Shown: one piece after another, positions 1,264-34,400 of the stretch
Position numbering within the stretch: position 1 is the stretch's first letter
How the letters are laid out: each line of letters begins with the position of its first letter
Source of the DNA: Klebsormidium nitens
Taxonomy: Eukaryota > Plantae > Klebsormidiophyceae
Reading direction: 5' to 3'
NCBI GenBank assembly: GCA_000708835.1
Contig: DF237186.1
Coordinates: forward strand, 1 to 64,000
DNA length: 64,000 nucleotides
The notes under the pieces: generated by a model
What the model saw: the letters and a program-made list of their open reading frames with translations, nothing else
What the model was told of the DNA's origin: nothing
Database searches by the model: none
Position numbers and translations under genes: made by a program

Positions 1264-4200
1264 TCAGTCCTCCCATACATCGGCGAGTTCGTCCGGTTGC
1301 AGCGGGTTCGCTGCGAGGTGCGTTTTCCGCCGTTGCTTGGCCTTCACCTTCTTGACGTACTTGCCAGCCTTGGCCTTCTTCTCGTTCGATCTCAGCTGCA
1401 GCCAACAGGCGGACACGTGTCAACAATTCAGAGGCACTCGATCCGTGATAGCTTTCGAAAGAATCTGCATGGAATTGGACACGGATACAGTCCATGCAAT
1501 CGAGAAGCCGGGTTCGCGCTGTATGCCCGCAAAGACGACACAATGACACGCGCCGATTCCAGCAGACAATATCAAGACCCAACATTTGGGCGATACACAT
1601 TTTCTGCACTTTGACATGTGGTTGCACTCGATCATTTTCGGCGGGGAACGCGAAGACATGGGCAGTCTGGAAGAAACTCCAAAAAGCTCCGTTTCGGATT
1701 GGGGTTCGGGAATACGAACCAGATTGGGTGAGACGTAGTCCGGGTTCTCGTACAGCGTCGCCCCCGCGAAGCTGTTTGAGAACATCTTGATCGGGTTCAG
1801 CACGAAGCGGGGACCGACCTGGAAACAGATGGAAGAAGTCAGAAACGCTTCGATCCGGGATGGTTTACATCCTGAAATAATGGAGAAGAAAGGCCCTGAC
1901 AGTGTGCGAATCAGTTGTAAGAATCTCGGAAATTCATGCTCGAGAAACTGGAGGAATACAGTAGAGGTACGGTGCGCAGAAAAGACAGTATGTTTCCATG
2001 AGAACAGCCGGATACTCACACAAGGTTTCCGAGCATTGACGGACTGGATTTAAGCAAGAAGGCGGGCCGCCAAGGTAATGCTTGACAAAAGCGCGCAAAA
2101 GAAGTGCGCTCAAAGCCCTTGAAAGTTACGCACTGGCGAGAGCAGCAGTGAAATAGGCGCCGACCACTTTCGAAGCCGGCCCCGCCGTGCTTTGCTTACG
2201 TCACGCCAGTTTTAGGAGGGCGCACGCAAGCGTTTTCCAGGCTTCTTCCCGGTGGAATGATGTAGTTTCGGAGAGAGCTCTCGTGTATTCACTGATGACC
2301 TCTGTGATGGATATCGTGCTCCCCTTAGCAAACAATTCTTGTCAAGAATAACTTTGGGTAACAGCAACTCTTGACGTCACGCCCAGCTTCCAAGAAGAGC
2401 GCGCCCTCACCTTGAGAGGGGTCACCTTCTCAGGTCGACTCTGCTCGACGCCTGTGGATTCCGCAAGCCTTGCAGAATCTAAGTGACGCAAAAAGGTGAC
2501 TCGAGCGATGACGTCATGCCTGCTTACTTCAATCGACGTCCTTACGACGATCGTCGAAACTCCGCACGGGCATGGGGACTTCAAACCTTGTGGACCGAGC
2601 AAAAGCTGAGGCCGTACAGGATGACGTCAAAGATCGATGTCGAGCCCGCTCACATCAACGAGCGCCATCTTCTCCAGCGCCGCCTTGTCGAGCTTCCCGA
2701 GCGGCGCGGGAACCGCAGTTTTGCAGTTCCCAAGAAATCAAAAGGTCAAAGACGACGTCAGATCATGTCAAGAGGTGACGTGTGCTCACCTCGATGAGCG
2801 TCATCTTCTCCAGCGCCGCCTTGTCGAGCTTCCCGAGCGGCGCGGGGACCGCAATCTGGTAGTTGCGGAACCAGATGCGGCCGTCCAGCACCGAGAACGC
2901 GAACACGTGGTCCACGAATGGCTTCACCTTGCGGTGCTCCTTCGGCGTGCCGAATATCTGTGGGGTCGGAAGTAAAGGTTTACGAGGTTATTCCGGAATA
3001 TAGGGTGTTTTGGAACCTCAAACCTTTGAGTTTGTGGGAGGGGTACGAAGTAAAAAACGTGATGTGCAAACGGCTTCACCTTTCAGTGCTCCCTTAGGGC
3101 CAGTTATACGAAAAATAAGTGGTTCAAAGTTTTTGGGGTTTGCCGTTAAGGTATCAGGGCAGACGAGTGATATACGAACGGCTTCACCTTGCAATACGCT
3201 CTACGCAAGCCGAATGCTCGCAAGCAGTGGGGTAGTGGTTGCGTTGAGGGTCTTCACCTCGATTGTTGAACAAACTTCAGATTTGAAGGGACAGGTCTAC
3301 AACAATCACCCCCACAAGCGAGAAGGATAATGAAAGTCGACGAGCCTTCACTTGCGGTGCTCGTCGGGCGGACTGAACATCCACAGGCGCTGAGTCAATT
3401 CAACAACTTCAACTACGCCTGTCGCCTTTTCGCATATAAACATAGACAGAATCCGCTCCAACGGGGCGAAAAAGTCTAGGCAGGAGAACCGGCTAGGTGC
3501 GGAAATATTGAAAAGGCGACTCTTTCAACGGAGCACTCACTTGCGTGAGCAGCTCTTTGGTGACCTGCAGATGCGGCAGCTGGTCGAACTCGGCGGAGAA
3601 GGAGAGGACGGGGCGGGAGCCTTTCAGGTGGTTGCCCGTCAGCTTCAGCTCGTCCATGGTGTGCACTGCGAGACAAGCGGAATAGGTGTGAATACGGGGG
3701 CAAGAAAAGGTGTGAATACCGGCACTCGGAATGGTTGCCCGTCAGCTTCAGCTCGTCCATGGTGTGCACTGCGAAACATGCAAAATCGGTGTGAATACGG
3801 GGGCAAGAAAAGGTATGAATACGGGATTCGATGTTGGTACTCGGAATGGTTGCCCGTCAGCTTCAGCTCGTCCTTGGTGTGCACTGGGAAACACAGCGGA
3901 GTGGGTGTGAATACGGGGCAAGGACGGGTGTGAATGCGGGTTGATGTTGATGAATAAAAAGCGATTTCGAGCTTAAGCTTCGTTCGCAGTGTGCGCTGCA
4001 AATGAAACAAACCAACAGGGAGATTCGGAGAGCTGTTGATAAAGGAGACGTGAGGGGGAAACTGTTTTTGTGACGCCGGCATGGCCTCCTGCAGCGACTG
4101 CAATCATTACGTGCCTGACTCGAGAGCTGACTCGACAAGTAAGTCACGACAAGTAAGTCACGCCGCCTCTGGGTTTCCCACGAACGAAACCATTGATGCG

Positions 4201-6103: not shown

Positions 6104-6440
6104 TGCTGCTGAAAGGTTGATGCGATGTACCGAGTGAAGCTTTGCCGCCAATGTGGTAAACCACCACTGACTTGAAAAGTACCACCACTCAATGCTTTGT
6201 GAAAGTTGGAAAAACTCAAGGAGACGACTGGTGTGCAAACTTAGAACAAGTGAATTGAGAGCCTGAGATGGGCCAAGTTGTCTTGGAGCAGCTCTGAGCT
6301 AGGACTAGGGCCAAGGATCATGCTTCGTTCAACAGATCATGCTTTGGTAACAGATGGCTTTGCAAACTAGAGGCTTGGTTCCCTCATACCATTAACGCTC
6401 AGTATTGAAGTTTGACAGGGTGACCGTTTGCAAGAGCCTA

Positions 6441-6572
6441 AAATCATAAGAACACTTTAACAACCAATCACAGATCCAGGATTGTCAGTTCCGTTCAATC
6501 TCAACCTTCCGATAGGGGTGTTGGGGGGCGCCCGGACGGTTGCAAAGTGCTCCTGGTGTGCCGAAAACGCCG
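6441..6572. repeat. Split direct repeat B2 (terminal copy)
   Basis: AAATCATAAGAACACTTTAA...CCGAAAACGCCG is nearly identical to 7649-7778 (one substitution, one 2-nt indel). Confidence 0.95.
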
Positions 6573-6958
6573 GGTAAGGCATAGGGGCACCGGAGGTTTG
6601 CGTATGACGTCCGGGACAGTGCGGCGACCTGCAGGGGTTGCATTACCGGGAAGGTCGCCGCGGACCGAAGGTTGAAATTTTGCGGTTCTGACCGGGGGGG
6701 ACACAGATCGACGGTTGTGAGCAGTCGATCGAAGAAGTCAGGGTTTGGGGGTTTTTGAGTGACGCGCGATGAGCGGTGGGGCCGAGCTCTGGCGAGTAGG
6801 AAGCAAAGGGAGGTCTGCATTACAAAAGGTGCCTGCGGTAATGGAGGTCGCGTTAGGGGGCAGTGGGCCGGAAGCGGCCACTGACAGGTGAGATTTCTGT
6901 CTTAAGTGTCTTTAGCTTGTCTTTAGGGTGGGTGGGCTGGGTCGAAGCGGAGCTTCTC

Positions 6959-7645
6959 GAACGAAGCGCTCAACAGCAGAGGAGGCGCCACGGGCGCTTT
7001 CCTTCTTCGCAGACCTGAAAGAGTGCAACATCTTTCTACTTTTGAACAAGACGTCTAGATGCACAGAGTGAGTCAGCAGGGGCAGTGTGACGGTTGGACG
7101 GGTTTCAACGCTGCCCGTCTGCTAGACATGTGCGGAATCCATGCCCAGCTTTTCAGCCCAACTTAGGTTCACCTTCAGCAAGAGCGCCTCTCAGAAAAAT
7201 TGTTGCTCTCTTGCCTTCTTCCCAAGTTCTTTCTTTTCTCTGATCAGTTAGGACTCACGAAGAGGCTCCATGTTCAGATTTTGGGAAGTCTCTAGACTCG
7301 CCCCNNNNNNNNNNNNNNNNNNNNAGAACGCCGTATATCAACGGTCTCACAGCGCGCCGTTAAGACGTAACCGCTGTCGTTTCGCTAACAAGCAGCTAAC
7401 GAAATCCTGACGAGAACGAGGTTAGGCTTAACCAGACGTAATCGTCACAGGCAGCTTCGGCAGCTCAGCTGGGCGCGCACGCGCGCGGCACTCGCGCTTA
7501 GGCGGCGGGCGGCCGCGGGCTGGGCCCGGTTGTCTGCGCCCGGTGCTTATGTCAGGCGCCACATTCCGGGCTTAAATTGCTTGTGTTATCTAACGGACTT
7601 AGCTGAATTCACTGCGCATCGTAGAGCAGGCGAGTATTCCGATGA
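6959..7645. repeat. Split direct repeat A2 (internal copy, interrupted at 7086-7449)
   Basis: 6959-7085 plus 7455-7645 together reconstitute 13964-14283, with about 5 differences. Confidence 0.93.
7086..7449. mobile_element. Nested LTR-type insertion (solo LTR or gap-collapsed LTR retrotransposon)
   Basis: Starts TGTGACGGTT and ends AATCGTCACA (9/10 inverted match, TG...CA). Flanked by a GGCAG duplication (7081-7085, 7450-7454); the uninterrupted A1 copy has a single GGCAG. Contains a 20-N assembly gap at 7305-7324. Confidence 0.85.
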
Positions 7646-7648
7646 CTA

Positions 7649-7778
7649 AAATCATAAGAACACTTTAATAACCAATCACAGATCCAGGATTGTCAGTTCC
7701 GTTCAATCAACCTTCCGATAGGGGTGTTGGGGGGCGCCCGGACGGTTGCAAAGTGCTCCTGGTGTGCCGAAAACGCCG
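7649..7778. repeat. Split direct repeat B1 (internal copy)
   Basis: Near-identical to 6441-6572 and directly abuts A2 through CTA. Confidence 0.95.
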
Positions 7779-7825
7779 CCCCAAAAAGACAATCGTTTGC
7801 CAAACGACAATTATAGGAGATAACA

Positions 7826-8968
7826 GTGGATTGTGAGTGCAGGTTGGACTTTCAACGAAGCTGCGAAGAACAGTTGCGGATTGTTAGAGGGGTTGGGCTG
7901 GGTGGGAGCTGCACAGCAGGGGATCGGATGAGTTCGGAGCAGACGCGACGCTTTTACGAGGGGGCGCTCGCTAGCTTTGGAAAGATAGCGGAAAAGAGTG
8001 TGAATGAGGCCAGTAACAATAGCCGAAAGCGAACGTTCCAGCAATTTCAGGGTTTCTTGGCGCAAAATGCCTTTGGCATCACCGTTGAGACTGCCACGCC
8101 TGCAGATGTAGGGGCGTTTATTGTTGGGGATTGGATCCCCAGTCATAGTGCCGGCTGCCGTACTAAGCTGCCGCAAACTGGAGAGTGCATTCCGTCGGTC
8201 TCCGCGGTGACTCATGTGGTGAAAGATTTAGCTAAGTCGTACGCTTTGCTCGGCTACGAAGGCCGGAGTAACCCTGCCAAATCCGAAGTGGTTAAATCAT
8301 TTCGGGTGGGTTACGAAAAGATGCTGCACGAGCAGGGCGTGAAGGTGAAACGGGCGAAAGTGTTTACCGAAGAGAAGTTGGACGCCCTGCTGGCGCACCT
8401 TGCGCGACTGATCCAGGCGAGCGGCCCGGGTTTAGAGAGATGCGTGCTGCTCACCGACCAGGCGGCCGTGTTATACCTTTGGGAGTCCCGTGCCCGCGAG
8501 AAGGACTGCGGACAGCTGCAGCGACAACAAGTCAAACTGGGGGAGCAGGCGGCCTACCCGGGTTGGAGCAAGACCGTCCGGCAAGAACCGAGCGCGCGCA
8601 TCCCGCTCGCGGTGCCGGTTCCGGAAGGGCGCCTGGCGTTTGTGGAAGCCGCCGTCCAGCTGCTGCACGGGATGGAGGAAGGGGGCTTTCCCGTTGGCGA
8701 GGATGGTTTCCTATTTCGCGCCATGAATCGGAGTCGCACCGGCTTCGTCAATGAGCCGATGAGCAGCGATACGCTGAGGAAGCGGATACAAAAACGGCTT
8801 AAGGACGCTGGTCTGTTCGAGGGGGAGACCGTACACAGCTTCCGGCGTTCGGCCGTCCAGCATGCTGCAGTAAATCTGAATTACAACGTGAAGGAGTTAA
8901 TGGATTTAGGACGTTGGAAAAGCTATGCCGCTTTCCGGTTGTACGTAGAAGAAGTTTGGCGAAAGTGA
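7826..8968 (+). CDS. Tyrosine recombinase/integrase of the retroelement
   Basis: 380-aa open ORF with candidate catalytic residues R (WESRAR), K (WSKT), HxxR (HSFRR), W (GRW) and Y (FRLYV). The true start codon is uncertain (GTG at 7826 or ATG at 7928). Confidence 0.9.
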   Translation: MDCECRLDFQRSCEEQLRIVRGVGLGGSCTAGDRMSSEQTRRFYEGALASFGKIAEKSVNEASNNSRKRTFQQFQGFLAQNAFGITVETATPADVGAFIVGDWIPSHSAGCRTKLPQTGECIPSVSAVTHVVKDLAKSYALLGYEGRSNPAKSEVVKSFRVGYEKMLHEQGVKVKRAKVFTEEKLDALLAHLARLIQASGPGLERCVLLTDQAAVLYLWESRAREKDCGQLQRQQVKLGEQAAYPGWSKTVRQEPSARIPLAVPVPEGRLAFVEAAVQLLHGMEEGGFPVGEDGFLFRAMNRSRTGFVNEPMSSDTLRKRIQKRLKDAGLFEGETVHSFRRSAVQHAAVNLNYNVKELMDLGRWKSYAAFRLYVEEVWRK

Positions 8969-9274
8969 CCTTGATTAGACTGATTGCCTGTGCGCTGACG
9001 TTCTTCCGGTTGAGGCCGACCTCAGATTTTAATCAACTCGAACATTGCAACGGCTGTTAATGTTTCATACACAGACCTTTATCCACATGACTCTGCGCTT
9101 CTCGCCATAGGCGTGTCTGGCTGTGTCTATCATAAGCGCCCACTAATGACGCATGGGTCCTGCATCTCGTGCTTGCCTTTAATGTTGTATGCACTTGTCA
9201 CTCAGAAGCACGGCGCTACATCATTAATCCTTTACGGCGCACATAGTGTGAATCCCCGCCTTTTCTAGCCTACC

Positions 9275-11680
9275 TTACTTCCAATTAATCTTAAACACTC
9301 GAAGCTTATATAATGCTGGATTGACCGTTCCAGCCGGCACCCGCCTGCTAGGGATGCACGCATCTGTAGACCGCTCGATGGCCAGAGGCCCTGCCATGAC
9401 CGCGCCGCTGCCTAAACTCATCAGCTCGACCCACCAGTTTGTGGTGGTCGCTTCCGGAACCACTAGAATTGCGTCCGTCCTGAAGTTTCGCAACGACTGC
9501 AACACGCTAGGAATGGCCCTAACTGGCGGGAATATCCACGCCGTTTCGCCTTGCTTAACTAGCGTCCTCCAATCCGTCCGGAGAGCGTCGACTGCAAGGC
9601 AGCCTGGCATATAGCGGGGGGTCACAAACCGCCCCGCCACATGCCACGTGTCAGAAGCAAAGAGGTCGACGTCCGGCCGACCGAAGAGCGAGATGACGTC
9701 AGCGAAAACCTTGGGGGTTAGGCCCCAGTCCGACGCGTCGGGGACTCGGCTAAGGGCGTCCTGTTCTGCCAGCTCTATCCGTGGTTTCCACTGGGCTAAA
9801 ACGTCGAAGTCCGCTTCTGAGCAAAGCTTGAAGATCCCTTGCAGAGCGGCGTTGACGTCGGACGCCGAGCTCCTGAAGTTGTTAACGGCCGCCACCGCTC
9901 CTTGGTTGTCGCCGACCAACAAAACGGCTGCCCCCGAGAGAAGAGGACGGTGGCGTTGCACTGCTTGCTGTAGAATTCGGAGAAACCCAATCATTTCGCG
10001 CGCGGTGCTGGATTGGTGGACCTCCGTCTCGGTTAAGGACCCCGCTAAGTGGAAAGGGGGGCTGCCGGCAATGTAGAAGGATCCCCCGAAGCCGAAGTCC
10101 GAGGCGTCCGAAGCTGCCTCGATCCGGATCTGACGTGGAAACCATCGCCGTCCGTTCCAGTCGTCCAGGCGCTCCAGGAAAAGCTTGGCCGCGTCCTTGG
10201 CCGCTTGTGGGGTAGCGAAAATCGCGTCCCACGAAATGCGACCTTGCATCGCCTGGAAAAGGGGCCTGCTGTACAAGGAAGCGGGGAGCACCGCGGGTCC
10301 TAGCGCGATAATCTTCCCCGCTACTTTGGCAAGAATCCGGGGGCTGACTTCCTTTGCCCCTAGAAGCTCCCCTAAGGCCGCTTTCACCTTAGTCATCTTG
10401 GCTGTTGAGACCCGAAACTGCTCCGCCTGCGTGTCTACCACGAACCCGAGCCAGTCGCCCGTTTGGACTGGCCAGAACTGGCACTTTGGCAGACTGAAAA
10501 CTGCCCCAAGGAGGGTGAGGAAGCGAACAATCGCCACGATGAGCCAAAGGCAGAGGGCGAAGTCCTGGTTGGCCGTCAGGCCATCATCTAGATAACTGGA
10601 AACGGGGACACCCCGGGTTCTGAGCTCTTTGGCCGCTTCTTGGGTTATAAGCGTATACGCATAGCAGGCTTCGGACCACCCGAAGCACATCGCGTTGTAG
10701 TAGAAGTAGGCGGTGCCGATCTTGAAGCCGAAGTAGGTCCGAAAGCGGGGGTGAATGAGGACGTGGTAGTAGCCGGCTTTGAAGTCCCACGTGGCAAAAA
10801 AGCCTTTGGACGAGAGGAAGGTGAGGATGTCGCGGAGCGTTTCGTACTTGAACGGGTGCGCTTTCGAGAAAGCGTTGATGTAGCCGGCATCCAGGACGAG
10901 GCGTCCCTTGGGGAGGTTTACTACGCCCAAGGGGTTTACGACTTTTGGTTTTCTTTCACCCGCCGCGCAGAGGTGAACGGAGCCGTTGACGAGCATCTCC
11001 CCCACTGTTTCGAGAGCAAACTCCGAATTCTCGTAAAACGAGCGGTGGTTGGGAAATTCCACCGGGTGAGGCACTTCTCCCGAGAGCCACTCCTCAACTC
11101 TTGAAACGCCCACCGTTCGCCTGAGCATAAGCCGAACCCGCTCTAACTTTTTAGGGTCGCACTCTGCCGTTCCCACGAAGGACGGCTTGATGCCGTTCCG
11201 CAGCCAGGACAACACCGTCTTGGAGGACGGCCTTGTGGAATCCTTCAGAAGCTCTTCCCAAATCGGAAGGTGGCGGCCGAAGCAGCCCGCCACGAAACTC
11301 TCTACCGGATTCACTTTGGTTACAACGGATTTGATCCACTCTGTCAGCTCGCCTTCCCGCAGCGGGCTTATCTCAGGCCCCGCTTCGATTTCCATCAGAA
11401 GCTCCCTCAATTCCCGGACAAGCTGCTCGTTATTCGGCGTCGGCGGGATCCGAGGAATGAACTGGGCGAAAAATTTAACATCCCACTCCAACAGATCAGA
11501 AGCGTTAGCGGGGCTGCCTAACGGATCTGCTTCGAGGTCTATCTCTACAGACGACGGCTCGAACGAGCTAGCAGCGTCTACGTCGAGCCCAACATCCGGG
11601 GAAACCTCCGGTAATTCGCTCGCTTGTTCCAGCCTGGCCGGGGGATCCCCTCCGGGCAGCGCGGCCGCCGCCGCCGCCAT
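9275..11680 (-). CDS. Pol: reverse transcriptase + RNase H + DIRS-type methyltransferase-like domain
   Basis: 801-aa intact ORF. RT motifs WDFKAGYYHV, YYNAMCFGW, YLDDGL. RNase H motifs SDASDFGFGG, SSTAREM, GDNQGAV, QDALSR. C-terminal PDVDLFAS...DAL..W...WIFPP...ILVVP...WW motif pattern of the DIRS MT-like domain. Confidence 0.95.
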   Translation of the reverse strand: MAAAAAALPGGDPPARLEQASELPEVSPDVGLDVDAASSFEPSSVEIDLEADPLGSPANASDLLEWDVKFFAQFIPRIPPTPNNEQLVRELRELLMEIEAGPEISPLREGELTEWIKSVVTKVNPVESFVAGCFGRHLPIWEELLKDSTRPSSKTVLSWLRNGIKPSFVGTAECDPKKLERVRLMLRRTVGVSRVEEWLSGEVPHPVEFPNHRSFYENSEFALETVGEMLVNGSVHLCAAGERKPKVVNPLGVVNLPKGRLVLDAGYINAFSKAHPFKYETLRDILTFLSSKGFFATWDFKAGYYHVLIHPRFRTYFGFKIGTAYFYYNAMCFGWSEACYAYTLITQEAAKELRTRGVPVSSYLDDGLTANQDFALCLWLIVAIVRFLTLLGAVFSLPKCQFWPVQTGDWLGFVVDTQAEQFRVSTAKMTKVKAALGELLGAKEVSPRILAKVAGKIIALGPAVLPASLYSRPLFQAMQGRISWDAIFATPQAAKDAAKLFLERLDDWNGRRWFPRQIRIEAASDASDFGFGGSFYIAGSPPFHLAGSLTETEVHQSSTAREMIGFLRILQQAVQRHRPLLSGAAVLLVGDNQGAVAAVNNFRSSASDVNAALQGIFKLCSEADFDVLAQWKPRIELAEQDALSRVPDASDWGLTPKVFADVISLFGRPDVDLFASDTWHVAGRFVTPRYMPGCLAVDALRTDWRTLVKQGETAWIFPPVRAIPSVLQSLRNFRTDAILVVPEATTTNWWVELMSLGSGAVMAGPLAIERSTDACIPSRRVPAGTVNPALYKLRVFKINWK

Positions 11681-12278
11681 AGGCGCTGGGGGGCTGTCAG
11701 TACAAACGTACGGCTTTTAGCCATGGCAGGGTCCTTCTGTTCATGACAACTCTAACATTCAATTAAAATTGTCCTCTTCTTGCGACGGGTTAGAGAATTC
11801 GATGAAAAGCGCTGCGGGGGGATCCCCCGCGCGGCGCGGCCGCCGCGTCGCCATAGGCGATGAGCTGCTCCTGACGTATACTTTATCAGAAGCGACAGTC
11901 ACGCCTATTCCTCTATCCTCCAGACGCGAACCAGCACGGACTAAGATGGGGCTCAGAAAGACAGAATGATGATGTTTCTTCCGGTGCGTTTAACATTGGG
12001 CGCCAGTTCTCGCCTCTAAAAACTGAACGACAAAACGAGACAATCGTGGTCTTCTCGACCTTGTCAGATTGTAAACTTTCAAGTGATTCCAATCTGACGG
12101 CAGCGCCGATACATGTTGTCCAGTTCCGAACTCCTACTGTTCTCTACGGGTCCTCGAACGCTTATCTTCTAACTCTGTAACGTATGAGTTCCTTCTCGGT
12201 CTTGCCGCTAACCGACTGTAAAGCTAAGCCAACCTCGCTAACAACCGATCTTAACCGAATCTTTACGAACATGTTTAC

Positions 12279-14072
12279 CTGTTCCCTCTATTCTGGCCTG
12301 CAGCAGGATCTCCCTGATTCTCTCTATCTCCAAACCTAGGGCGCCCGCCACCTTGGCCGCCTCCAAAATTCTGCCTTCCTCCCGAGTGGGGGGCGTTCCA
12401 GCCGCCTTGGTTATTGTTGTTCCTTCTGCAAGCCGGCACACACCAGCATCAGGACACATGCCTGCCTATAATAGGCTTTTCTCACATCTTGAGGGGCGTC
12501 TATGCCCGGGCGCGCAGCCCTGTAACGGCACACATGGCCTGGCAACATGCCTTTTGGTCCTTATCGGACGATAACCCTTTACCAGGTAGTGCCCACAGGG
12601 CTTTGGCATTCAGCCAGCAGAAGACTTTATTTGCTCACAAGGCAAGCCCTCAGGCCTTGAATTTATGCACTGCAAGCCTCCTCAAGTTCTTGCCCATAGG
12701 GCTCAGGCATTCAGCCACGTGGCGGATGTTTCGAAGCGACTGCCACGTCCGTTTAACTCGTCTCTATTGCAGAGCGAGGCCACCGTGCGCCTCCACTTAA
12801 TTCAACACTACGCAACCTTGCAAACCTTCTTAATCCAAGCCAGAATTTGCTCTACTCGAGCGGCCTGCAGCGTTATTCTCTGAACGACAAGCAACGGTTA
12901 TCGGAGCCGATGGCCATAGGCCTAAAGATGGGGAACCAACCGACCTGGGTGGCTTGTCCGGATCGAAGAGAGGGCGAACAGTGCCCTTGCCAACCATGGT
13001 ATCCGCCTTCGCCTTGCTGTTGAAGAATGCGTGGCGGATTTCAGCCTCCAGGGACGCCCTCGTCTCCGGCGTCCACGTGGTGCTGTCCCCCGCTTGCTCG
13101 AGCTTCATTTTTCGCTCTGCCACAAATGCGTTGGCGAGCCACTCCAGATCCGGTGAGACATAATTGAGACGAGTCGCGTAGAAGTACACCGCTGCCAGGA
13201 GGTGGGCCACCTGAGAGTCCGGCTCCTGGTAAATATCAAAGAGATAGCTAGCCTTTGTGTACCACGCAGCCATCCTCGGGTTAATCTCACGAAGCACTGA
13301 CGTCAGATGCGTCTCCAGAGTTCCTTTAGAGACCAACTGGCGGATCGTCTTTTCCAGTCTGGCTGATGAAGCAGGGTGGAACGGGTTGTTCAAAACCCCC
13401 CTGCAGAATCCTCATGGCCGGCGTTTGCGCACCCAGTGCTGCAGGTGTTTGTTCAGGATTTCCCCCCATGCCGTAAATCGGCTGCGGAATCTGGACCTGA
13501 GGAGGTCTGACGTCAGCCTGCCCTTGTCCCCCCTGCGGAAACGCTTGAGCGTTCATGGGGGGAGGCCCCAAAGTGCACTGCAGGACCTTGCGGACGAGCA
13601 CCTTGCTGGGGTTGGTCCTGCTGAGGGGCCGGAAAGGCTCCGAATCCAGAGACGGCCACAATGTACTTCTCCCATTCTAACTTGTATTCCTTCAGAGCCT
13701 CGATTATCGGGTCGTTCAGCAAACGAGTCCCTCTCCCAATTCTCAAGTCCTGAGGCGGGATGGTGCCTGGGTAAAGGTTGCCTTGTTCATCTACTCCCGA
13801 GAAGGTGCCATACGGATGGATCAAGTTGAGAGAATGGTCAAAACCTGCCTCCCCTGATACATGACCAGAAAGTCCTTCCCCACCAGCCAGGGGAGCTGCT
13901 TAATTGCGATCAGGATCTCTAGCTCGCGCTCCATCCCGGAAATCTCGGGGCCAACGACAAAATGAACGAAGCGCTCAACAGCATCGGAGGAGGCGCCACG
14001 GGCGCTTTCCTTCTTCGCAGACCTGAAAGAGTGCAACGTCTTTCTACTTTTGAACAAGACGTCTAGATGCAC
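12279..14072 (-). pseudogene. Gag-like ORF1 of the retroelement, apparently spliced and frameshifted
   Basis: Overlapping minus-strand ORF pieces (14072-13821, 13824-13513, 13661-13326, 13393-12945) shift frame, two of the shifts at C6/G6 runs. A phase-2 GT-AG intron (12944-12426) then joins in frame to a 147-nt N/G/R-rich exon (12425-12279). The Gag identity rests on position only. Confidence 0.55.
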
Positions 14073-14283
14073 AGATGAGTCAGCAGGGGCAGCTTCGGCA
14101 GCTCAGCTGGGCGCGCGCGCGCGCGGCACTCGCGCTTAGGCGGCGGGCGGCCGCGGGCTGGGCCCGGTTGTCTGCGCCCGGTGCTTATGTCAGGCGCCTC
14201 ATTCCGGGCTTAAATTGCTTGTGTTATCTAACGGACTTAGCTGAATTCACTGCGCATCGTAGAGCAGGCGAGTATTCCGATGA
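13964..14283. repeat. Split direct repeat A1 (terminal copy)
   Basis: Matches 6959-7085 + 7455-7645. Confidence 0.95.
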
Positions 14284-14996
14284 CTAGCTTGCTGGTTTTG
14301 TGACATCACTTTTGAGAATCCTCCTCGGTGTCGGCGATCTTGGTCCCACTGAATCTGCCCGTGTCAAGGCGGATTTTGAGGGAAATAATCGGGGTAGTTA
14401 ACCGGGAAGCTGACCAGGGGTCGGCTCCCACACGAGAAGAGTCGGTTTCCAGAGTGGAAATCAGCCGGGTGGAAACTGGCTCCACGGGGACTCAAGCGGG
14501 TCACGTGGTCTGGATCACATGGGGAGCTCTTTTTTGCTGCACCGCAGAGGAAAGCAGTCGCCGGAGCTGTGTCAGCTTGGGAAAGCCTTTGCTAGTGTCA
14601 AGAAAGTGTGCCCGGGCAATCTGGGTACTTGTCTAGGCTCAACGGCTGGGTCGGAGTACAAGAGAAATAAGGGTGCTCCCTTGATATACCAAGGTACACC
14701 GTACCCCTGCATGGTTCACTATCTGGACTTGACACTCCCTGCTTGAATCTTGCTTCGCAGATATTTGTCGAGCCCCCAACAAGCAGGAGATTGCAGCATT
14801 TCTGTCATGCTGAATTGCTGAATTGCAGCGTGTGTTTGTTTTGTGCAAAGGCACCAAGCTGTTTGATTGCGCGCTGCTTTTTGCCAGGGAGGAAGGGGAC
14901 AAGGCTGTGCTTGGAGAGGTCGATCGAATTGTGTTTGTTTCTCTGTTTGTGAGAGCGAAGAGTGCACCGTTGCAGGTTGTTCTGTAGCTACTTACG

Positions 14997-25400: not shown

Positions 25401-28400
25401 AGGTCCATTTGAACGACCCTACCGCGATTGCGAAGCTGCAGGAGGCGAGCAGCACCAACAGCCGCGTAGTCTACGCCGAGTTCGCCAAGATGACGCACGA
25501 GCTCAACAAGAAGGTCAACCTGCGCGGCATGCTGCGCTTCAAGACCGCGCCTGACGGGCCCATCCCGCTCGAGGAGGTCGAGCCCGCGTCAGAGATCGTC
25601 AAGCGCTTCTGCACCGGTGAGAATTCGCGAATGTGTCTGCCTAGGTTTGCCCGCTGCTTCGCTTTCCGTCCAGTGTGCCCGATCTTTCGTCTGGTGCAAC
25701 TTGGCGTCCTATCAGCAGGAAAAACGTGTATTGATCTCATGTCACCAGGAGTGGAAACTGGTGCTTCGATCAACAATTAGGGCGCATGTTCGCAATCCCT
25801 GGAAGTGTTCAACCTTCCAAACTCCCTGCTCTTCTTAATTGAGAATCTTGAGAGGTCGTCGACAGCACTGTTCTTGTAGGAAAAGTTCTCATTTGCACTG
25901 TAATGCCTAGGCGTTTGAACAAGGCTTGAAGAGCATTGGAGCCAGTGTCTCGAGCCGCTAGCCTCTCCTTAAAAGATCCTAACCGATTTCTGCAGGCGCC
26001 ATGAGCTACGGTTCCATTTCGCTCGAAGCCCACACCACTCTAGCGGAAGCCATGAACAAGATCGGCGGAAAGTCCAACACCGGCGAGGGGGGGGAGAACC
26101 CCGGCCGTTTGGAGCCCCTCGCCGATGGCAGCCAGAACCCGCAGCGGAGCGCCATCAAGCAAGTTGCCAGCGGTCGGTTTGGCGTGACCAGTTACTACCT
26201 AACCAACGCGGATGAGCTGCAGATCAAGATGGCGCAGGGGGCCAAGCCAGGTGAGGGTTTGGAAGGCGGGTTTGCATGAGAGTTAAGAGAAGGGTTTCAG
26301 GAGTATATGGAGGCGTTTCGACCTAGGGGGGAGGTAAATTCAGACTACGAGTTCGGAGGGAAGGTGAAAGAGAGCTTCGAAGGAAGGGCAGCGAGTGTTT
26401 GGTCCCCTTTCGTTATTTTTGAGGGATGATGGCGTGAGTTCTGGGTACAAGGTCAGATGCAATCAAAATGGACTCCGCTTCAGGAAGGGAAACTCTGAAA
26501 AGATGTCGGATTTGGATTAGCTCGAATCTCACTCCGCAGCGTCCTCTGTGTGCCGTCAACACCGCTTGAATCTAACACCCCCCCTCCTGGGTCGTCTTCA
26601 AACATCCCCCTCGTCTCACTCCGTTCTGAACCACCCCCTTTTTCATTTCTGTTCGACCCACCCCCTTTTCTGCTCCTCTCTGAACAACCCCCCCCTTTTT
26701 CGTCCTTTCAGGCGAGGGCGGCGAGCTCCCCGGTCACAAGGTCATTGGCGACATCGCCGTGACTCGTCACTCCACCCCCGGCGTGGGCCTCATCAGCCCA
26801 CCCCCCCATCACGACATTTACTCCATCGAAGATCTGGCGCAGCTCATCTACGATCTCAAGAATAGCAACCCGAGCGCGCGGGTCAGCGTCAAGCTGGTTT
26901 CGGAGGCGGGAGTGGGAGTCATCGCGTCGGGAGTGGTCAAGGGCCACGCTGGTAAGTTGATTGGGCTATTTTAATGGTTTCCTCGTCATTTTGATCCACC
27001 CGGCTGAGAAGCTTCTGGTTGTGTTTGGTATCTGTGGCTGCTTAGTGCAGAAGCTGAAGATGGCATTACCCTTGAAAATCGAAGCCGTTGTGCATCTGCA
27101 GTCAAGCTGACTGCAAGGACGTTTGCGCTCCCAAGGGATACAACATCTCAGTTCGGGACTCAATTTTCAATCTTGGACTGAAGTTGGGTTAATGGCATGG
27201 CAATTTGATGAGGCAACTCTTGGTTCAGGACTTGCTGCAATGAGCAGACCCAATCCATAAACCTCGTTTCACCACGTCTGACCCCACGCCTCCTTCACCA
27301 TTCCTACTTTCCACACACCCTAGACCACTTCTAACCTTTGAATCTGTCTCCTCCAGACCACGTGCTCATTTCCGGTCACGACGGCGGCACCGGCGCCTCC
27401 CGCTGGACCGGCATCAAGAACGCGGGGCTCCCCTGGGAGCTCGGTCTCGCGGAAACGCACCAGACCCTCGTTGCGAACGATCTCCGCGGCCGCACTGTCC
27501 TCCAAACCGACGGGCAGCTCAAGACCGGGCGTGACATCATGGTCGCGGCGCTCCTCGGCGCGGAAGAGTACGGGTTCAGCACCGCCCCGCTGATGACGAT
27601 CGGTTGCATCATGATGAGGAAGTGCCACAAGAACACGTGCCCCGTCGGGATTGCAACGCAGGACCCGGTGCTGCGTGAGAAGTTTGCGGGCGAGCCCGAG
27701 AACGTGGTTAACTACTTTTTCATGGTCGCGGAGGAGGCGCGCGAGTACATGGCGAGCATGGGCTTCCGCAACATCGACGAGATGGTCGGGCGCGCCGACA
27801 TGCTCGAGGTGGGTTTGATATTCAGTATGCTTTCGTTCAGGTTCGGAGACACTTCTGCTCTTCTGCTTTCGCCAAAACGGATTGTGGTGCTTTTTGCTTT
27901 TGCCGAAACAGCATTGCGTGGTGCGAATGTTGAGCTGGTTCGTGAGAAGCGTGGCAAGTCGGTCTTGTATAGCGACGCTTCTTTAGACAGAAGTTGGGAG
28001 ACTAGAGGCCCGAGCACCGGCTTAGATTACCATGGTGGAGTTTTTATTGACTACACGAGCCGAACACCGTGCAGATCCAGAGCATCACACCTTAGTAAGA
28101 AGACACAAAGAAGTAGCGCCTTCCCTTTACCGGCGGCTTAGGTCGCCGCTAATCTGATGCCCCATCGCTCCGGGAACAAACTCACAATCCAGGAGTCAAT
28201 TCTGTACATCACACTGTCACTGGATTGCTCTTTGTCTCAATCGCAGACGGATTCCAGTGCTCATTTCCCCTCGCTTTACACCTTACAGGTTTGACCCCGA
28301 TGTTGTCAACGCCTGCAACAAGCTGTCCCACCTCGACCTCTCCCCCCACCCTATCCCTTTAATTCCCAACCCACTCGGTAACACTCTTTAGTGGGCTCAT

Positions 28401-31400
28401 GTATCCTAAATTGATTGGAATCGCCTCTTTCCAGGTCGATCCTGACGTCGTCAATGCGCGCAACAAGCTGTCCCACCTGGACCTCTCCCCCATCCTGCTC
28501 CCTGCGTCCACTCTTCGCCCGGGCGCCGCACAGCGGTGCGTTCAGAAGCAGGACCACGAGCTGAACATGGCGCTCGACAACGAGCTTATCGAGCAGGCTA
28601 GGCCGGCGCTTGACAAGGGCATGCGGGTCTACTGCGAGGCGGAGGTGGTCAACGTTAACCGTGCGGTTGGGACCATGCTCAGTCATGAGGTAAGTGGAGG
28701 TACTGAAGGGTCGTTTGCAAGTCGGAGATGTTTGCGAGAAAAAATGAGGAATGGACATCGAAACTGGGTGAATCCTTCTGAACGATGCTCACTTTCTTGA
28801 GACCTTTTAACAGCCATCAAAGCCTTCAATTGCCTCATAATGACACCTGACCGATTCCCCCGAGCCACCTTCAATTGCATACGATTCTTGCTTTGCAAGA
28901 GGTGTGAGAGCCAGAGTGGATTTTTCTCGTTGCCTTCTTTATGCAAGAATTCTCTTCCTGAACCTCCTGGCCTCTCTGCAGGTGACCAAGATTTACAAGC
29001 GCGAGGGCCTCCCCGCCGACACGATCCACGTCAAGCTGACCGGCAGCGCGGGACAGTCCCTGGGCGCGTTCATGTGCGCGGGGATCACCCTGGAACTAGA
29101 GGGGGACAGCAACGACTACGTTGGTAAAGGTCTGTCCGGAGGAAAGGTCATCGTGTACCCCCCCCGCAAGAGCACGTTCAAGGCGGAGGAGAACATTGTG
29201 ATTGGCAACGTGGCGCTGTACGGTGCGACGTCGGGCGAGTGCTACATCAACGGAATGGCTGCGGAGGTGAGGCGGAGTTTTGGTTGGAGCCCCATGGGTT
29301 GTGTCTAGTTGAAAGTCCACCTAGAGCTCTGAAAGTTGCTCATGGTGTTTGTAGGCAGGGCGGAAAGAGTAAGACCTGCTATTACACCGTCGTCCTGTCC
29401 GCAGAAAGGGCGATCGCTTTTGAAAGTCATGTGTTTAGCAGATGCGTCACGTTTTGACGGCCTTGTGAACGGCCTCATGTTTATGTTTCTGTAGAACATA
29501 AAAGAGTCTGTACCTTCCAGTCTAACATCATCGGACACATCTGTTTCAAGTGCTTTTTATCGCTTTACGAAAGCGCCCTTCTGTAGCCTCTTCTGTCAAT
29601 CCGTTCGTATCTTGTCCTGTCAAAAGTCGCTTCCGAACTACCGTTTCGTCTCCCAAGTCTCCTGGACCATTTACGCAAGGGGTTCCTCTTCCCGCTGGTC
29701 GTACTTCTCGCCTTTCGTTATTCTGTTGTCTTTGATTCCCCGCCGCTCTTTGCATCCTGTTTCCAACCCGCTAACCTCTCTCAACCTGCTAAGTTTGTCA
29801 TCCCGTTCGTCCAGCGCTTCTGCGTCCGCAACTCTTGTGCCAACCCGCCGAACTCTCTAAATCCTACTTAACCCCGCTTAACCCGTCCGTACAGCGCTTC
29901 TGCGTCCGCAACTCTGGCGCCAAGGCCGTTGTCGAGGGCGTGGGCGACCACTGCTGCGAGTACATGACCGGCGGAGTGACCGTCGTTCTGGGCGGAACGG
30001 GGCGGAACTTCGGCGCCGGAATGAGCGGCGGAGTGGCCTACGTTCTGGACATCGAGAAGGGGTTCAAGCAGAAGTGCAACCGGGGGACGGTGGACCTGGA
30101 GAAGGTGACGGACGAGGAGGACAAGCTGGAGCTCAAGTTCCTCATCCAGCAGCACCGGCGGCACACCAACTCGTGAGGCCGTGGTTCTGTTCGCCTGTTC
30201 CTTTCTCGCTTCTATTGCTCGCAAATAGAAGCTGAAAAGCCCGAGCGATTACGAAACGTGCCTAGCTACTCCGCTTCTTTTGCTTTTCGTTCGTTGCGAA
30301 GTTGTTCCCGATCTTTTCTGCCTCTTTCTGCGGCCCTTGGCTTGTCTCTGATTCCTGAACTCACTTACCAAATCACCTTCTTAGCAGCCACCCCGTCAGT
30401 AAACCCCATCTAAATGTGCGGCTGATCGAAAGAGTGCTGGCCAGCTCCGAGCACCTTGCTTCTTTATGAGCCCACCACCCTCTCAGATTCCGTCCTCTAA
30501 GCCCGTCGACTCCCCGATGATATGTCCTTAGCCCCACCTTTAACCCCGCTTTCTTCTTCCCTCCAGCCGCCTCGCCAAGTGGGTGCTGGCCAACCTCGAG
30601 CAGCTGCTCCCGGTGTTACCACAAGGTCATACCCGGCCCATACCAGAACATCATGTAACCCCTCTTTGACCCCGGTTATATTACCCCAACCCACTCCGCT
30701 TTCTTCTTCTTTTTCCAGCCGCCTCGCCAAGTGGGTGCTGGCCAACTTCGAGCAGCTGCTCCCCAAGTTCCACAAGGTCATGCCCCGCGACTACAAGGCG
30801 GTCCTGGAAGCCAACAAGGCCGCCAAGCGCGAAGCCGAGGAGAAGGCCGCGGAAGCGGAGCGGCTGCAAAAGGCGGACGCTTTCGCGGAGCTGCAGAAGC
30901 TGGCGCAGGATGCGGCTGCTAACGGGGTGTCGCCGCAAGTCGAGGTGAGGGCTAAATGCGTATGTACTTCTTGATGCTCGCGGAGTGCTTATCATCTTTG
31001 CTGCTTGCCGCGGGACCTCGGCACACTCCAACCCAGACCTTCGGACGCCAAGACAGTGTCAGGCTCAGGCCAGTCTCCATGGCTCACGGCAAATATCTCG
31101 AAGAGAAGCCCACGGATGTCCAGAAGATCAAGCCTGAGCGCCTCCGCTGAGTTCTTATCGAAGTTGCATGTTATCCCCGTCGCTTCTAGGGATATCATGA
31201 ACTCAAGCAAGCTCCCACCTCTTCCACCTCTCGAGAAAAGGAGCACACAAGCCGCTGAACGGCAAGTCCAAGCGGCCGATCCATTTCCATCTCTTCATAT
31301 GGAAGAATCTCGTAAATCTGCCCGTACCTTTTGCCTATGCTCGACTCCTTCTCTACTTCTATAGCATGCACTCGAGCTGCTGAACGGGCAGCTCAAGCGA

Positions 31401-34400
31401 CCGACGCACCTCCTCCTTATAGCCTTTGGCGAGCCCCGTAGCTTATGTTGAAACTTATTCTTTGCCCCTCAGGAGAAGCACGTGGAGCTGCTGAACGGCC
31501 AGCCCAGGCGGCCGACACTCCATTTGGTTTCGCTTCATTGCTTCTCGCGAGCCCCATACCTTATGCTCAACGCTAGTCTTGTTTCCTCCCTTCCAGGAGA
31601 AGCACGTCGAGCTGCTGAACGGGCAGCCCAAGCGCCCGACGCGCCTCGCCGACGCGGTGAAGAACCGTGGCTTCGTCATGTACGAGCGCGAGGCGCTGCC
31701 GTACCGGCCCGCGGAGGAGCGCGTGAAGGACTGGAAGGAGGTTTTGGCAGGCGAGAGGCAGGACGATCTGCTGAAGGCGCAGTCTGCGCGGTGCATGGAC
31801 TGCGGGACGCCGTTCTGCCACCAGGAGACGAGCGGGTGCCCGCTTGGGAACAAGATCCCCGAGTGGAATGAGCTGGTGCATCAGGTATGGCCGAAAGCCG
31901 CTTGTTTGGGGCATTCAGTTCCTAAGGATGTTAGATTGCGTCCCTGCGAGATGCAAATTTTCGGCGTTGGTCGGTCCGTTGTTGATACTTTCTTTTCTCA
32001 ATCGAGTTCACGAAAGGTACGTCGAACGAAAAGATGCCTTTCTGCTTCGTACGTGCTCATGCGGGGCAGCTTTTCCCGCAATTCGAGAGAGGATTTTCTT
32101 GGTCTTTTAACGCTTCGTTGGAGAGTCTTCCATCGTTCCTTCCAGCTTTCGTTGGTGTCCTACAGTAGTGCATAAGCGTTCGCTGCTCGTCCAAAACCCC
32201 TTGATCTTCGGATTCTCTGAGAGTGCCCTCGTAATTGTCTAGAGAATTTTGGCCGGAAGGAAGGGAGTCTTTCGTCGGAAGTGTTACGCGAAACCTCCCA
32301 CAAACGCCTCCTACCGCCCCTCAACCAGCTCTTTCACCTCGTCTTGACCACGCTCTTCCAGCGCCGTTGGTGCGAGGCTTTCTACCGTCTCCTCGAGATC
32401 AACAAATCCACAGAGTAAATACTACACAACTTTCTTTCACCTTCTCCCTTTTCGTTAACCCGGCCTCGGTGCTTCTTAAGCCTTCTCTAGACCTGTCTGA
32501 ACCACTCTCTTCCAGGGCCATTGACGTGAGGCTCTCGACCGGCTGCTGGAAACTAATAACTGCCCCGAGCTCAACATACCCGAGATTGCTCTTTTCACCT
32601 TCTGCTCTTTTGCTACCTCGCCCTCGAACCCTACTAAACCGTCGTAATCACCCCTTTCCAGGGCCGCTGGCGTGAGGCCCTCGACCGGCTGCTCGAGACC
32701 AACAACTTCCCCGAGTTCACCGGCCGCGTCTGCCCCGCCCCGTGCGAGGGCGCCTGCGTTCTTGGCATCATAGAAAACCCGGTTACCATCAAAACTATGG
32801 AGTGCACCATTATCGATAAGGCATTCGAGAACGGGTGGATGGTCCCCCGACCCCCCGCGCAGCGCACCGGGAAGAAAGTGGCGGTCGTTGGGAGCGGTCC
32901 GGCGGGCATGGCGGCGGCGGATCAGCTGAACAAGGCGGGGCATAGCGTGACGGTGTATGAGCGTGCGGACCGGATCGGGGGGCTCATGATGTACGGCGTG
33001 CCCAACATGAAGACGGACAAGGTCGAGGTGAGGGGACAGGGGACCGTTGCGCAGGAGAGAGAGTTCTCTATTGCTGATCCCGTTTGTTTGAGCAACTCGA
33101 GTTTTTGTGTTCGTTACTACTTAGAAAGGGTGTACATCGGGCGGTTTTTGTGGCGTCTTTTGGGCCTCAAGAAAGCTATTACTTGACAAAAGCAACCCTC
33201 TGTCCTATATCGTCACGCCAAATCCTCACGCCTTATCCGTTATATCTCTCGTCGTTCGATCTGATCCTGCTTACTGCTTCGATGTCCGTTTCGATGCTGT
33301 CCAGATCATGAAGAGTACCGAAACCCTTGTATCGTAGGGCGAAGCTTGAAGGGCGAACAACGATCAACGAACGATCTTCCCCACTGTCTAGTTGGTGGAG
33401 CCCCTGTGAGCTCCATGTAAAGGGAGGCGTCCCATTCGTAACCAGCGCCCACGTGTGTTTGTCACTAACAGACTGAATCCTGCAGTTGACACATTCTTCA
33501 GATCCCAAACCCCAGGCGACGTTGCCTGCAGGTCGTCGAGCGCCGCGTGAACCTGATGCGCGAGGAGGGCATTGAGTTCGTGACCAGCGCGCACGTGGGC
33601 GTGGACGGCAACTTCCCCATCGAGAAGCTGCGCGCGGAGCACGACTCCGTCGTGCTCGCGCTGGGCGCGACCAAGCCACGTGACCTGCCGGTGCCGGGGC
33701 GGGAGCTCGCGGGCGTGCACTACGCGATGGAGTTCTTGACCGCCAACACCAAGTCGCTGCTGGACAGCAACCTCGAGGTAATTGGACGGACCGGAAGTAC
33801 TTTGAAATTGCGGTTTCAGTTCTGTTCTGTTGTGGTTTGCAGGTGGTTGCGGTGCTCGGGGCAGCAGCAGTGCGAGTTCTATTCTCAGTCTCTGCTTCCT
33901 GCTTGTCAGGGAGCGGGTTGAGTCAAGTGAAGTGTCACATTGCACAAACCCTGGATGACACAGGCGTGGAGAAATGTTAGAACCGCGGCGCATGTTTTTC
34001 ATCCAGCAGACTATCCAAAATTGACCCAGACCGTCGTCTTCAACTAGCTTCTGTATGAAGCCCAAATTGGTCATGCTCTGTCCCAACCCCTCTCTTGCTT
34101 TGCAGTGCGTCCATTGGTTTCCCCGCTTCCGCCACGGCCAGCAAACAGCGTTCTTGCAGTCTCCGCCTCCTCACAAGACTCAGCACACGAAACCTGCCCT
34201 TCCCTTAGCTGCTCAAATTAGTTCCTCACACTAGTTCCTCAACTGTCCTCTCCAGGACGGCAACCACATCTCCGCCAAGGACAAGTCAGTCATCGTCATC
34301 TGGGCAGTTCAGTAGATTCTCACTCCCCTTCTAAAGCCGCTGAATGACAACCCGTAGGCGACCCACTTCTGACCTCAACCTCCCTGATCCGCAGGACGGC

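Follow-up and report, generated by a model that had tools for sequence, protein, structure and literature searches.

Conserved introns between gag and pol in a partly decayed PAT/kangaroo-type retrotransposon of Klebsormidium nitens, and the probable role of second-intron splicing in setting the Gag to Gag-Pol ratio

Ribosomal frameshifting or readthrough of a stop codon usually determines how much Gag a retroelement makes relative to Pol, and a few long terminal repeat (LTR) elements use splicing for this. In copia of Drosophila and in BARE1, splicing makes a Gag-only message (PMC3735527), and Ty1/copia elements of Arabidopsis do likewise (PMC5580714). For Ogre, a plant Ty3/gypsy element, PMC3735527 (citing Steinbauerova et al. 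2008) describes an intron between open reading frames (ORFs) whose splicing joins coding parts and which genomic copies keep, so that unspliced RNA must be the replication template. A further relevant group comprises kangaroo of Volvox carteri and PAT-like elements, which have split direct repeats, a gag without zinc finger, a reverse transcriptase (RT) and RNase H (RH) followed by a methyltransferase (MT)-like domain, and an inverted tyrosine recombinase (PMC4157794, PMC3266345). Here we describe an element of the alga Klebsormidium nitens that shares these kangaroo/PAT features, its RNase H being putative, and carries two introns between gag and pol. It lies in the window, by which we mean the whole analysed stretch of 64,000 nucleotides (nt; contig DF237186.1, positions 1 to 64,000 of the forward strand), and gag and pol are read from the minus strand.

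We consider it likely that this element is a partly decayed copy of a PAT/kangaroo-type retrotransposon with two conserved phase-2 introns, in which splicing of intron 2, and not a choice between acceptors, sets the ratio of Gag to Gag-Pol. Like Ogre, it has an inter-ORF intron and would need splicing to join coding parts; Ogre, however, has LTRs, a DDE integrase and a single intron, whereas here two phase-2 introns surround a coding micro-exon, the recombinase is a tyrosine recombinase and splicing of the second intron is predicted. With copia, BARE and the Arabidopsis Ty1/copia elements it would share the use of its own RNA splicing to adjust Gag against Pol. In all of those, though, the unspliced RNA encodes Gag-Pol, whereas here the inverse is proposed: splicing would be needed for Gag-Pol, and retention would lead to Gag. 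The original prediction, made from the sequence of this stretch, had regarded introns in a retroelement as unusual, for which Ogre, copia and BARE are precedents (PMC3735527). Introns are unmentioned in the DIRS-order overviews PMC3266345 and PMC6681497 (“intron” occurs 0 times) and in PMC4157794. Both the element type and this kind of trick are known; their combination and the depth of its conservation appear undescribed.

The window copy was compared with 12 related loci of four families, from K. nitens, metagenomes and Logan assemblies, whose pol is 41-80% identical to that of the window copy. A common plan was found, in which gag runs to a phase-2 donor and is followed by a small Asn/Gly/Arg-rich exon, a second phase-2 donor and an acceptor leading into pol. 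The donor and acceptor of intron 1 have homologs in all related loci, the acceptor reading (T/C)GCAG or similar, and the introns are kept in all 12 genomic loci wherever that part of the element is covered. Intron 1 ranges from 242 to 615 nt and intron 2 from 367 to 1076 nt with no multiple-of-3 constraint, and the intron bodies show identities of 0.38-0.66 against 0.55-0.87 for the flanking exons. In 10 of 11 loci, the doubly spliced frame enters pol. The proposed check was whether GT/AG sites and phases hold in sister copies whose intron bodies have diverged, and this is what we found, the divergence being one of length as well as of sequence. Together, the same plan in 12 loci and the intron-1 joint described below indicate that this retroelement has genuine spliceosomal introns between gag and pol.

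At L001-L003, on a 24.9-kb contig (ENA ERZ26165376), the sister element occurs as head-to-tail tandem units measuring 6500 bp, with 99.95% identity, together with one unit of 6597 bp whose recombinase is disrupted. The units are joined B-to-A, with both introns in each, and may represent a genomic tandem array or a concatemer.

The small exon, exon 2, is stop-free in the window and encodes RRNNNNQGGW...NRGN; tblastn with it finds sister loci at E 2e-18, 1e-9 and 6e-9. An open stretch of 57 codons is unremarkable here, many open stretches of 40-76 codons occurring in every frame, and the case therefore rests on comparison and RNA. Across ten loci, exon 2 measures 147, 168, 177, 150, 147, 123, 108, 96, 147 and 177 nt, a multiple of 3 in every one. 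For ten independent lengths, multiples of 3 throughout would arise by chance about once in 59,000 cases, and the chance stays well below 1% when relatedness is allowed for (seven distinct lengths). Furthermore, the ratio of nonsynonymous to synonymous substitution rates (dN/dS) is 0.10-0.31 with an excess of third-position changes (2/6/17 by codon position between the window and L008), and the codon split by junction 1 is preserved through differing bases (AG/A, AG/G, CG/G, GG/G; here and below a slash in a sequence marks the splice point). By its dN/dS and codon-position pattern exon 2 is under purifying selection in its predicted frame. A plain non-coding spacer between gag and pol was considered and is ruled out by the conservation of exon 2, its multiple-of-3 lengths and its dN/dS. 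The stop-free 147-nt exon ending at donor 12278 is thus present as predicted, and it is conserved in sister loci. Gag of this element has no zinc knuckle, and its Arg/Gly-rich (RGG-like) tail may be the nucleic-acid-binding part; the Gag proteins of Toc3 and kangaroo likewise have no zinc knuckle (PMC4157794).

Intron 1 has the donor CCCAG/GTCGGT (last exon base 12945) and the acceptor GCTTGCAG/AAGG (exon start 12425). Among the read runs used, X1 and X2 are probable RNA, X2 under the same species label, and cover the element at a depth of 2-3, and X3 and X4 are DNA-like. A 217-nt contig of run X2 joins 13008-12945 to 12425-12273 with 0 mismatches and flanks of 64 and 153 nt, skipping the 519 nt between them (“CT..AC” on the plus strand). 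The predicted phase-2 join of 12945 to 12425 therefore has its GT/AG sites in the genome and an exact joint in probable RNA. The same contig extends 6 nt beyond donor 2 (GTAAAC), to 12273; intron 2 is therefore unspliced in those molecules.

The last ~130 nt of intron 1 (12426-12560, minus strand) hold islands that are invariant in the five aligned family-1 loci, for example GGCATG..GCC..GCCATGTG.GC and GGCAT.GA. Farther upstream, two occurrences of a GAGCCCTGTGGGC-like motif are seen in the window, in L001 and in L008. When the 3' part of intron 1 was analysed for a conserved RNA structure, the result was weak and unconvincing (-21 kcal/mol, covariation term -1).

Intron 2 begins at the donor AACAG/GTAAAC (last exon base 12279) and reaches two AGs 8 nt apart, CTGACAG/CCCCCCAG/CGCC, so that the next exon could start at 11693 or at 11685. 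From 11693 the reading is S-P-P-A-P-M-A-A-A, which continues in the frame of the 801-residue pol ORF (9275-11680), and from 11685 it is SAYGGGGGRAARRGSPG...RRRRC*, a short Gly/Arg-rich frame; both AGs and both frames are in the sequence as originally described. In family 1, acceptor 2 is set by the conserved motif TTGTA[AC]TGACAG/C. With 100% identity, the pol ORF matches part of the K. nitens protein P0001, which places the window in this charophyte alga; the gene model of P0001 is exactly the predicted Gag-Pol fusion. The claim that the first acceptor yields this fusion is accordingly backed by the frame, the locus comparison and model P0001, and the intron-2 junction that would complete it is not among the probable RNA contigs. 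Protein searches with P0001 residues 40-260 returned no protein spanning exon 2 and pol, the matches being genomic gag pieces and one gene model of gag with exon 2.

If intron 2 is retained, Gag meets an in-frame TAA directly after donor 2 (AAC AGG TAA). Stops directly follow the intron-2 donor in all 11 loci, as AGG TAA, AGG TAG or AGG TGA, with ATG TAA in L013. RNA from which intron 1 is removed and in which intron 2 is retained would therefore encode only Gag with its RGG-like tail, even if the stop arose by chance. The intron-2 donor of L013 is AT/GTAAAT, not AG/GTAAAC.

Within intron 2 (11814-11862, minus strand) lies a 49-nt near-copy (~85% identity) of the pol start (11637-11688), behind a cryptic acceptor, ..CGTCAG/; a splice into it would give Gag 37 more codons and then a stop. 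A variant contig of X4, in which 11676 is joined to 11828 and 15 other letters are present, shows that some copies vary in the near-copy region.

We propose that three RNA forms would divide the work of the element. Unspliced full-length RNA would be the template for reverse transcription: since the introns persisted through the divergence of four families, reverse transcription must, on this reasoning, use unspliced RNA, of which the conserved islands in intron 1 could be a mark. Removal of intron 1 alone would yield Gag with the RGG-like tail, ending at AGG TAA after donor 2; the intron-1 junction of this form was observed, and one X2 contig fits it. Removal of both introns would place Gag in frame with Pol, as conservation and the public gene model suggest, and the frequency of intron-2 splicing would then set the ratio of Gag to Gag-Pol. 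The recombinase would be expressed separately from the opposite strand. The proposal has a counterpart in retroviruses, where unspliced RNA is the genome and spliced RNAs are messages, and here too the intron-1 islands are lost from spliced RNAs; the likeness to retroviral packaging is speculative, and no convincing conserved fold was found here.

Several observations weigh against this reading. No intron-2 junction was seen in the probable RNA runs X1 and X2 at their depth of 2-3, and the RNA label of these runs is a guess. By chance, a stop is expected after a phase-2 GTRA donor in roughly three quarters of introns, so its conservation alone is no proof of selection. Moreover, in families 2-4 acceptor 2 was picked with the pol frame known, and L004 is one base out of frame at the homologous acceptor. 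The window copy itself, with three frameshifts in gag, cannot make full Gag. Finally, the public models of sister copies conflict, with P0047, P0011 and P0029 taking the other frame of exon 2. For L004 (5989-6090), splicing at the site that corresponds to the L005 acceptor gives a frame that stops after 29 codons, through a defective copy or an assembly error.

Among the other explanations, the one that fares best is that Gag and Pol are made separately: intron 1 would be spliced for Gag, pol would be translated from its own ATG (11680) on unspliced or partly spliced RNA, and the fusion would be an annotation artefact. The lack of an intron-2 junction in the RNA runs fits this view, an ATG lies within 2-5 codons of the acceptor in the window copy, L001 and L013, and ORFs are separate or overlapping in most of the DIRS-order elements described (PMC3266345). 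The start codon of pol, however, is not conserved, no ATG being present near the pol start in L008, L004, L006 and L010. Moreover, phase 2 at both ends of exon 2 and a continuous frame into pol, in 10 of 11 loci and four families, would be needless if pol were independent. We therefore regard separate expression as unlikely.

The joint of 12945 to 12425 could also derive from DNA, namely from a processed genomic copy that lost intron 1 through reverse transcription of spliced RNA. Such copies are the naive expectation for retroelements, and the explanation draws on the guessed identity of run X2. But runs under the same species label hold only 0-8% of the element's words, a share that should be nearly complete in a DNA run of this species; the DNA-like runs X3 and X4, which extend over the intron regions, contain no joint at an intron border, and a 1614-nt contig of X4 is continuous over 11832-13442; and every related genomic locus keeps the introns where covered. 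A DNA origin of the joint is on these grounds very improbable.

The original prediction had proposed that the tandem acceptors at 11693 and 11685 are used alternatively, for Gag-Pol or for Gag with a Gly/Arg-rich tail, and that this choice sets the Gag to Pol ratio. Both AGs exist in this copy, each after C, and a branch-point-like CTGAC lies ~4 nt before the first; if it were the branch point, the second AG would be favoured. However, the AG at +8 is missing from the five other family-1 loci that show the acceptor, where the next AG is at +49 (L001), ~+53 (L008), +22 (L013) or +13 (L004 and L005), and the “Gag-alone” tail comes from reading the pol N-terminus, which is poorly conserved, in its +1 frame. 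The sister elements, with GACAG/C acceptors and no second AG, must work with a more distant branch point, and neither junction was seen in RNA. With the second AG unique to the window copy, the switch is ruled out as a mechanism of the family, and we hold it to be the least probable of these explanations, with hardly any weight; the two-acceptor arrangement is probably a chance feature, and this copy may occasionally use the second AG.

The layout of the element is collected in Table 1. By published criteria (PMC4157794, PMC3266345), with kangaroo compared by description, the element classifies as a PAT/kangaroo-type tyrosine-recombinase retrotransposon (DIRS order) of K. nitens, not as a generic, retrovirus-like Gag-Pol element. 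Its direct repeats stand in the split order A1 ... B1-A2-B2 that marks PAT-like elements, at 96-100% identity, and no inverted repeats were found. The insertion is young, because the repeats are nearly identical, and the copy is partly decayed. A1 ends 30 nt before the gag ATG (13934). A2 contains 364 nt (7086-7449) without counterpart in A1, and 386 nt (6573-6958) without match elsewhere in the element separate A2 from B2. In kangaroo the internal repeats lie between the MT domain and the recombinase (PMC4157794), whereas here pol ends at 9275 and the recombinase at 8968, and the internal repeats B1-A2 (7778-6959) lie beyond the recombinase; in this placement the element resembles the “novel” PAT of Daphnia (PMC4157794).

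Table 1. Parts of the element in the window, as positions of the whole stretch
Feature	Position	Strand	Basis or remark
Whole element, 7.85 kb	6438..14286	-	Split direct repeats, ORFs, domains
Order of parts: A1, gag, intron 1, exon 2, intron 2, pol, antisense recombinase, B1, A2, B2			
Repeat A1 (5' terminal)	13964..14286	-	99% and 96% identity to 7450-7648 and 6959-7085
Gag exon 1	12945..13934	-	Broken by three frame changes
Intron 1, 519 nt, phase 2, GT..AG	12426..12944	-	X2 contig joint and related loci
Exon 2, 147 nt, Asn/Gly/Arg-rich (RGG-like) tail	12279..12425	-	Sister-locus tblastn, length, dN/dS
In-frame TAA right after donor 2	12275..12277	-	Sequence; would end Gag if intron 2 is retained
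Intron 2, 585 nt, phase 2, GTAAAC..ACAG	11694..12278	-	Conserved sites, P0001 model
Candidate exon-3 starts: 11693 (conserved, pol frame) and 11685 (second AG, this copy only)	11685..11693	-	Locus comparison
Pol exon: N-terminal region, RT, RNase H-type motifs, C-terminal MT-like domain	9275..11693	-	Pfam, PDB profile, alignment, fold model
Tyrosine recombinase ORF, 380 codons	7826..8968	+	Antisense to gag-pol; Phage_integrase match
Repeat B1 (internal)	7646..7778	-	98-100% identity to 6438-6572
Repeat A2	6959..7648 (7450-7648 and 6959-7085)	-	Repeat comparison
Repeat B2 (3' terminal)	6438..6572	-	Matches B1

The pol product has an RT of Ty3/gypsy-related type: RVT_1 matches at E 4e-10 in the window and also in 11 of 11 aligned relatives, and the best PDB profile matches are the RTs of caulimovirus, Ty3 and HIV-2. 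Alignment columns reading DAS..G.GG, ..ARE.. and ..GDN.. are invariant. RNase H is suggested at motif level, by the invariant columns D525, E562 and D591 and by one RVT_3 match (E 0.0068) among 11 members. Downstream of RT/RH, an MT-like domain is weakly but consistently suggested. The C-terminal region matches Pfam Dam at E 0.0019, below the cutoff, and an AlphaFold model of the last 182 pol residues has a predicted local distance difference test (pLDDT) score of 77. For that model, nearly all of the top 50 Foldseek PDB hits are methyltransferases, the best being N6-adenosine methyltransferases (CAPAM) and KsgA/Dim1 (E 8e-3, probability 0.99, template modelling (TM) score 0.5). N6-adenine methyltransferases carry a (D/N)PP(Y/F) motif. 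At pol residues ~715-720 the alignment of relatives has an invariant F-P-P instead, so the domain may not be catalytic. Ngaro and VIPER are without the MT-like domain (DIRS features per PMC4157794, PMC3266345), and classification as Ngaro is ruled out by its presence.

As in the DIRS order, a tyrosine recombinase takes the place of a DDE integrase, and scanning of ORFs gave no rve domain. The window ORF matches Phage_integrase at E 3.5e-4, below the cutoff, and the L001 orthologue at 4.3e-6, its 27.1 bits equalling the cutoff; a PDB sequence profile of the recombinase gave no recombinase match. The H-x-x-R motif (HSFRRS) and the C-terminal Tyr region are conserved. In every related locus reaching past pol, the recombinase is antisense to and downstream of pol, giving the inverted orientation, and this recurrence rules out a nested Crypton insertion as its source. 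The listed start of this ORF is a GTG assigned mechanically, and ~35 codons separate it from the next ATG in frame. At 7817-7830 (plus strand) the window is without the recombinase ATG that is present in L001 (~3321, minus strand), with GATTGTGAGTGCAG against GGTTGATGTTGTGCAG. The window and L001 both end in TGCAG/G there, so the true recombinase start may lie in an upstream exon.

Decay of this copy is seen in gag. When queried by tblastn with the intact 336-residue gag of L001, it gives three high-scoring segment pairs in frames -3, -2 and -1. The breaks in frame fall near 13828, 13550 and 13395, and of gag only 13408-12945 shares its frame with exon 2. The gag ORF of the original prediction is therefore present in frame and joins exon 2, but by comparison with L001 it is the C-terminal half of gag only. 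Sister contigs differ from the window by 1-nt indels at 13392 and 13566, at two of the three places of frame change. The pol and recombinase ORFs are still open in this copy. A metagenome scan with a gag alignment for further copies yielded no confirmed relative.

The public model P0001 begins at an internal Met of gag. For the K. nitens loci L006, L009 and L013 (GCA_000708835.1), the models P0011, P0029 and P0047 use the other micro-exon frame or different acceptors, and a single element is divided between the two gene models P0047 and P0008. These public models look ab initio; we treat them as prediction, not as independent evidence. Outside the element, the window holds short tandem or dispersed direct repeats at 2648-2864, 3629-3940, 28282-28503, 32341-32719 and 44759-48519, with units of 77-300 nt and 70-93% identity; some resemble repeated coding modules.

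More broadly, we tentatively propose, as a possibility somewhat short of even, that a streptophyte-algal PAT/kangaroo clade recodes Gag and Gag-Pol by the host spliceosome, with two ancient phase-2 introns gating genomic RNA, Gag-RGG and Gag-Pol, and with intron sequences marking the sole template. If true, the DIRS order would have its first example of this kind, with a logic opposite to that of copia and BARE. A splicing-dependent Gag-Pol fusion, which sequence comparison suggests to be conserved down to ~40% pol identity, would mean that the introns survived many rounds of reverse transcription, and that the elements must therefore reliably choose unspliced RNA as template. It would also imply that a key expression step has been handed to the host spliceosome. 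For annotation, the gene models of these elements are inconsistent, several having the wrong micro-exon frame. With K. nitens culturable and its genome sequenced, the element would offer a tractable system for how a non-LTR, non-retroviral retroelement separates genomic from messenger RNA.

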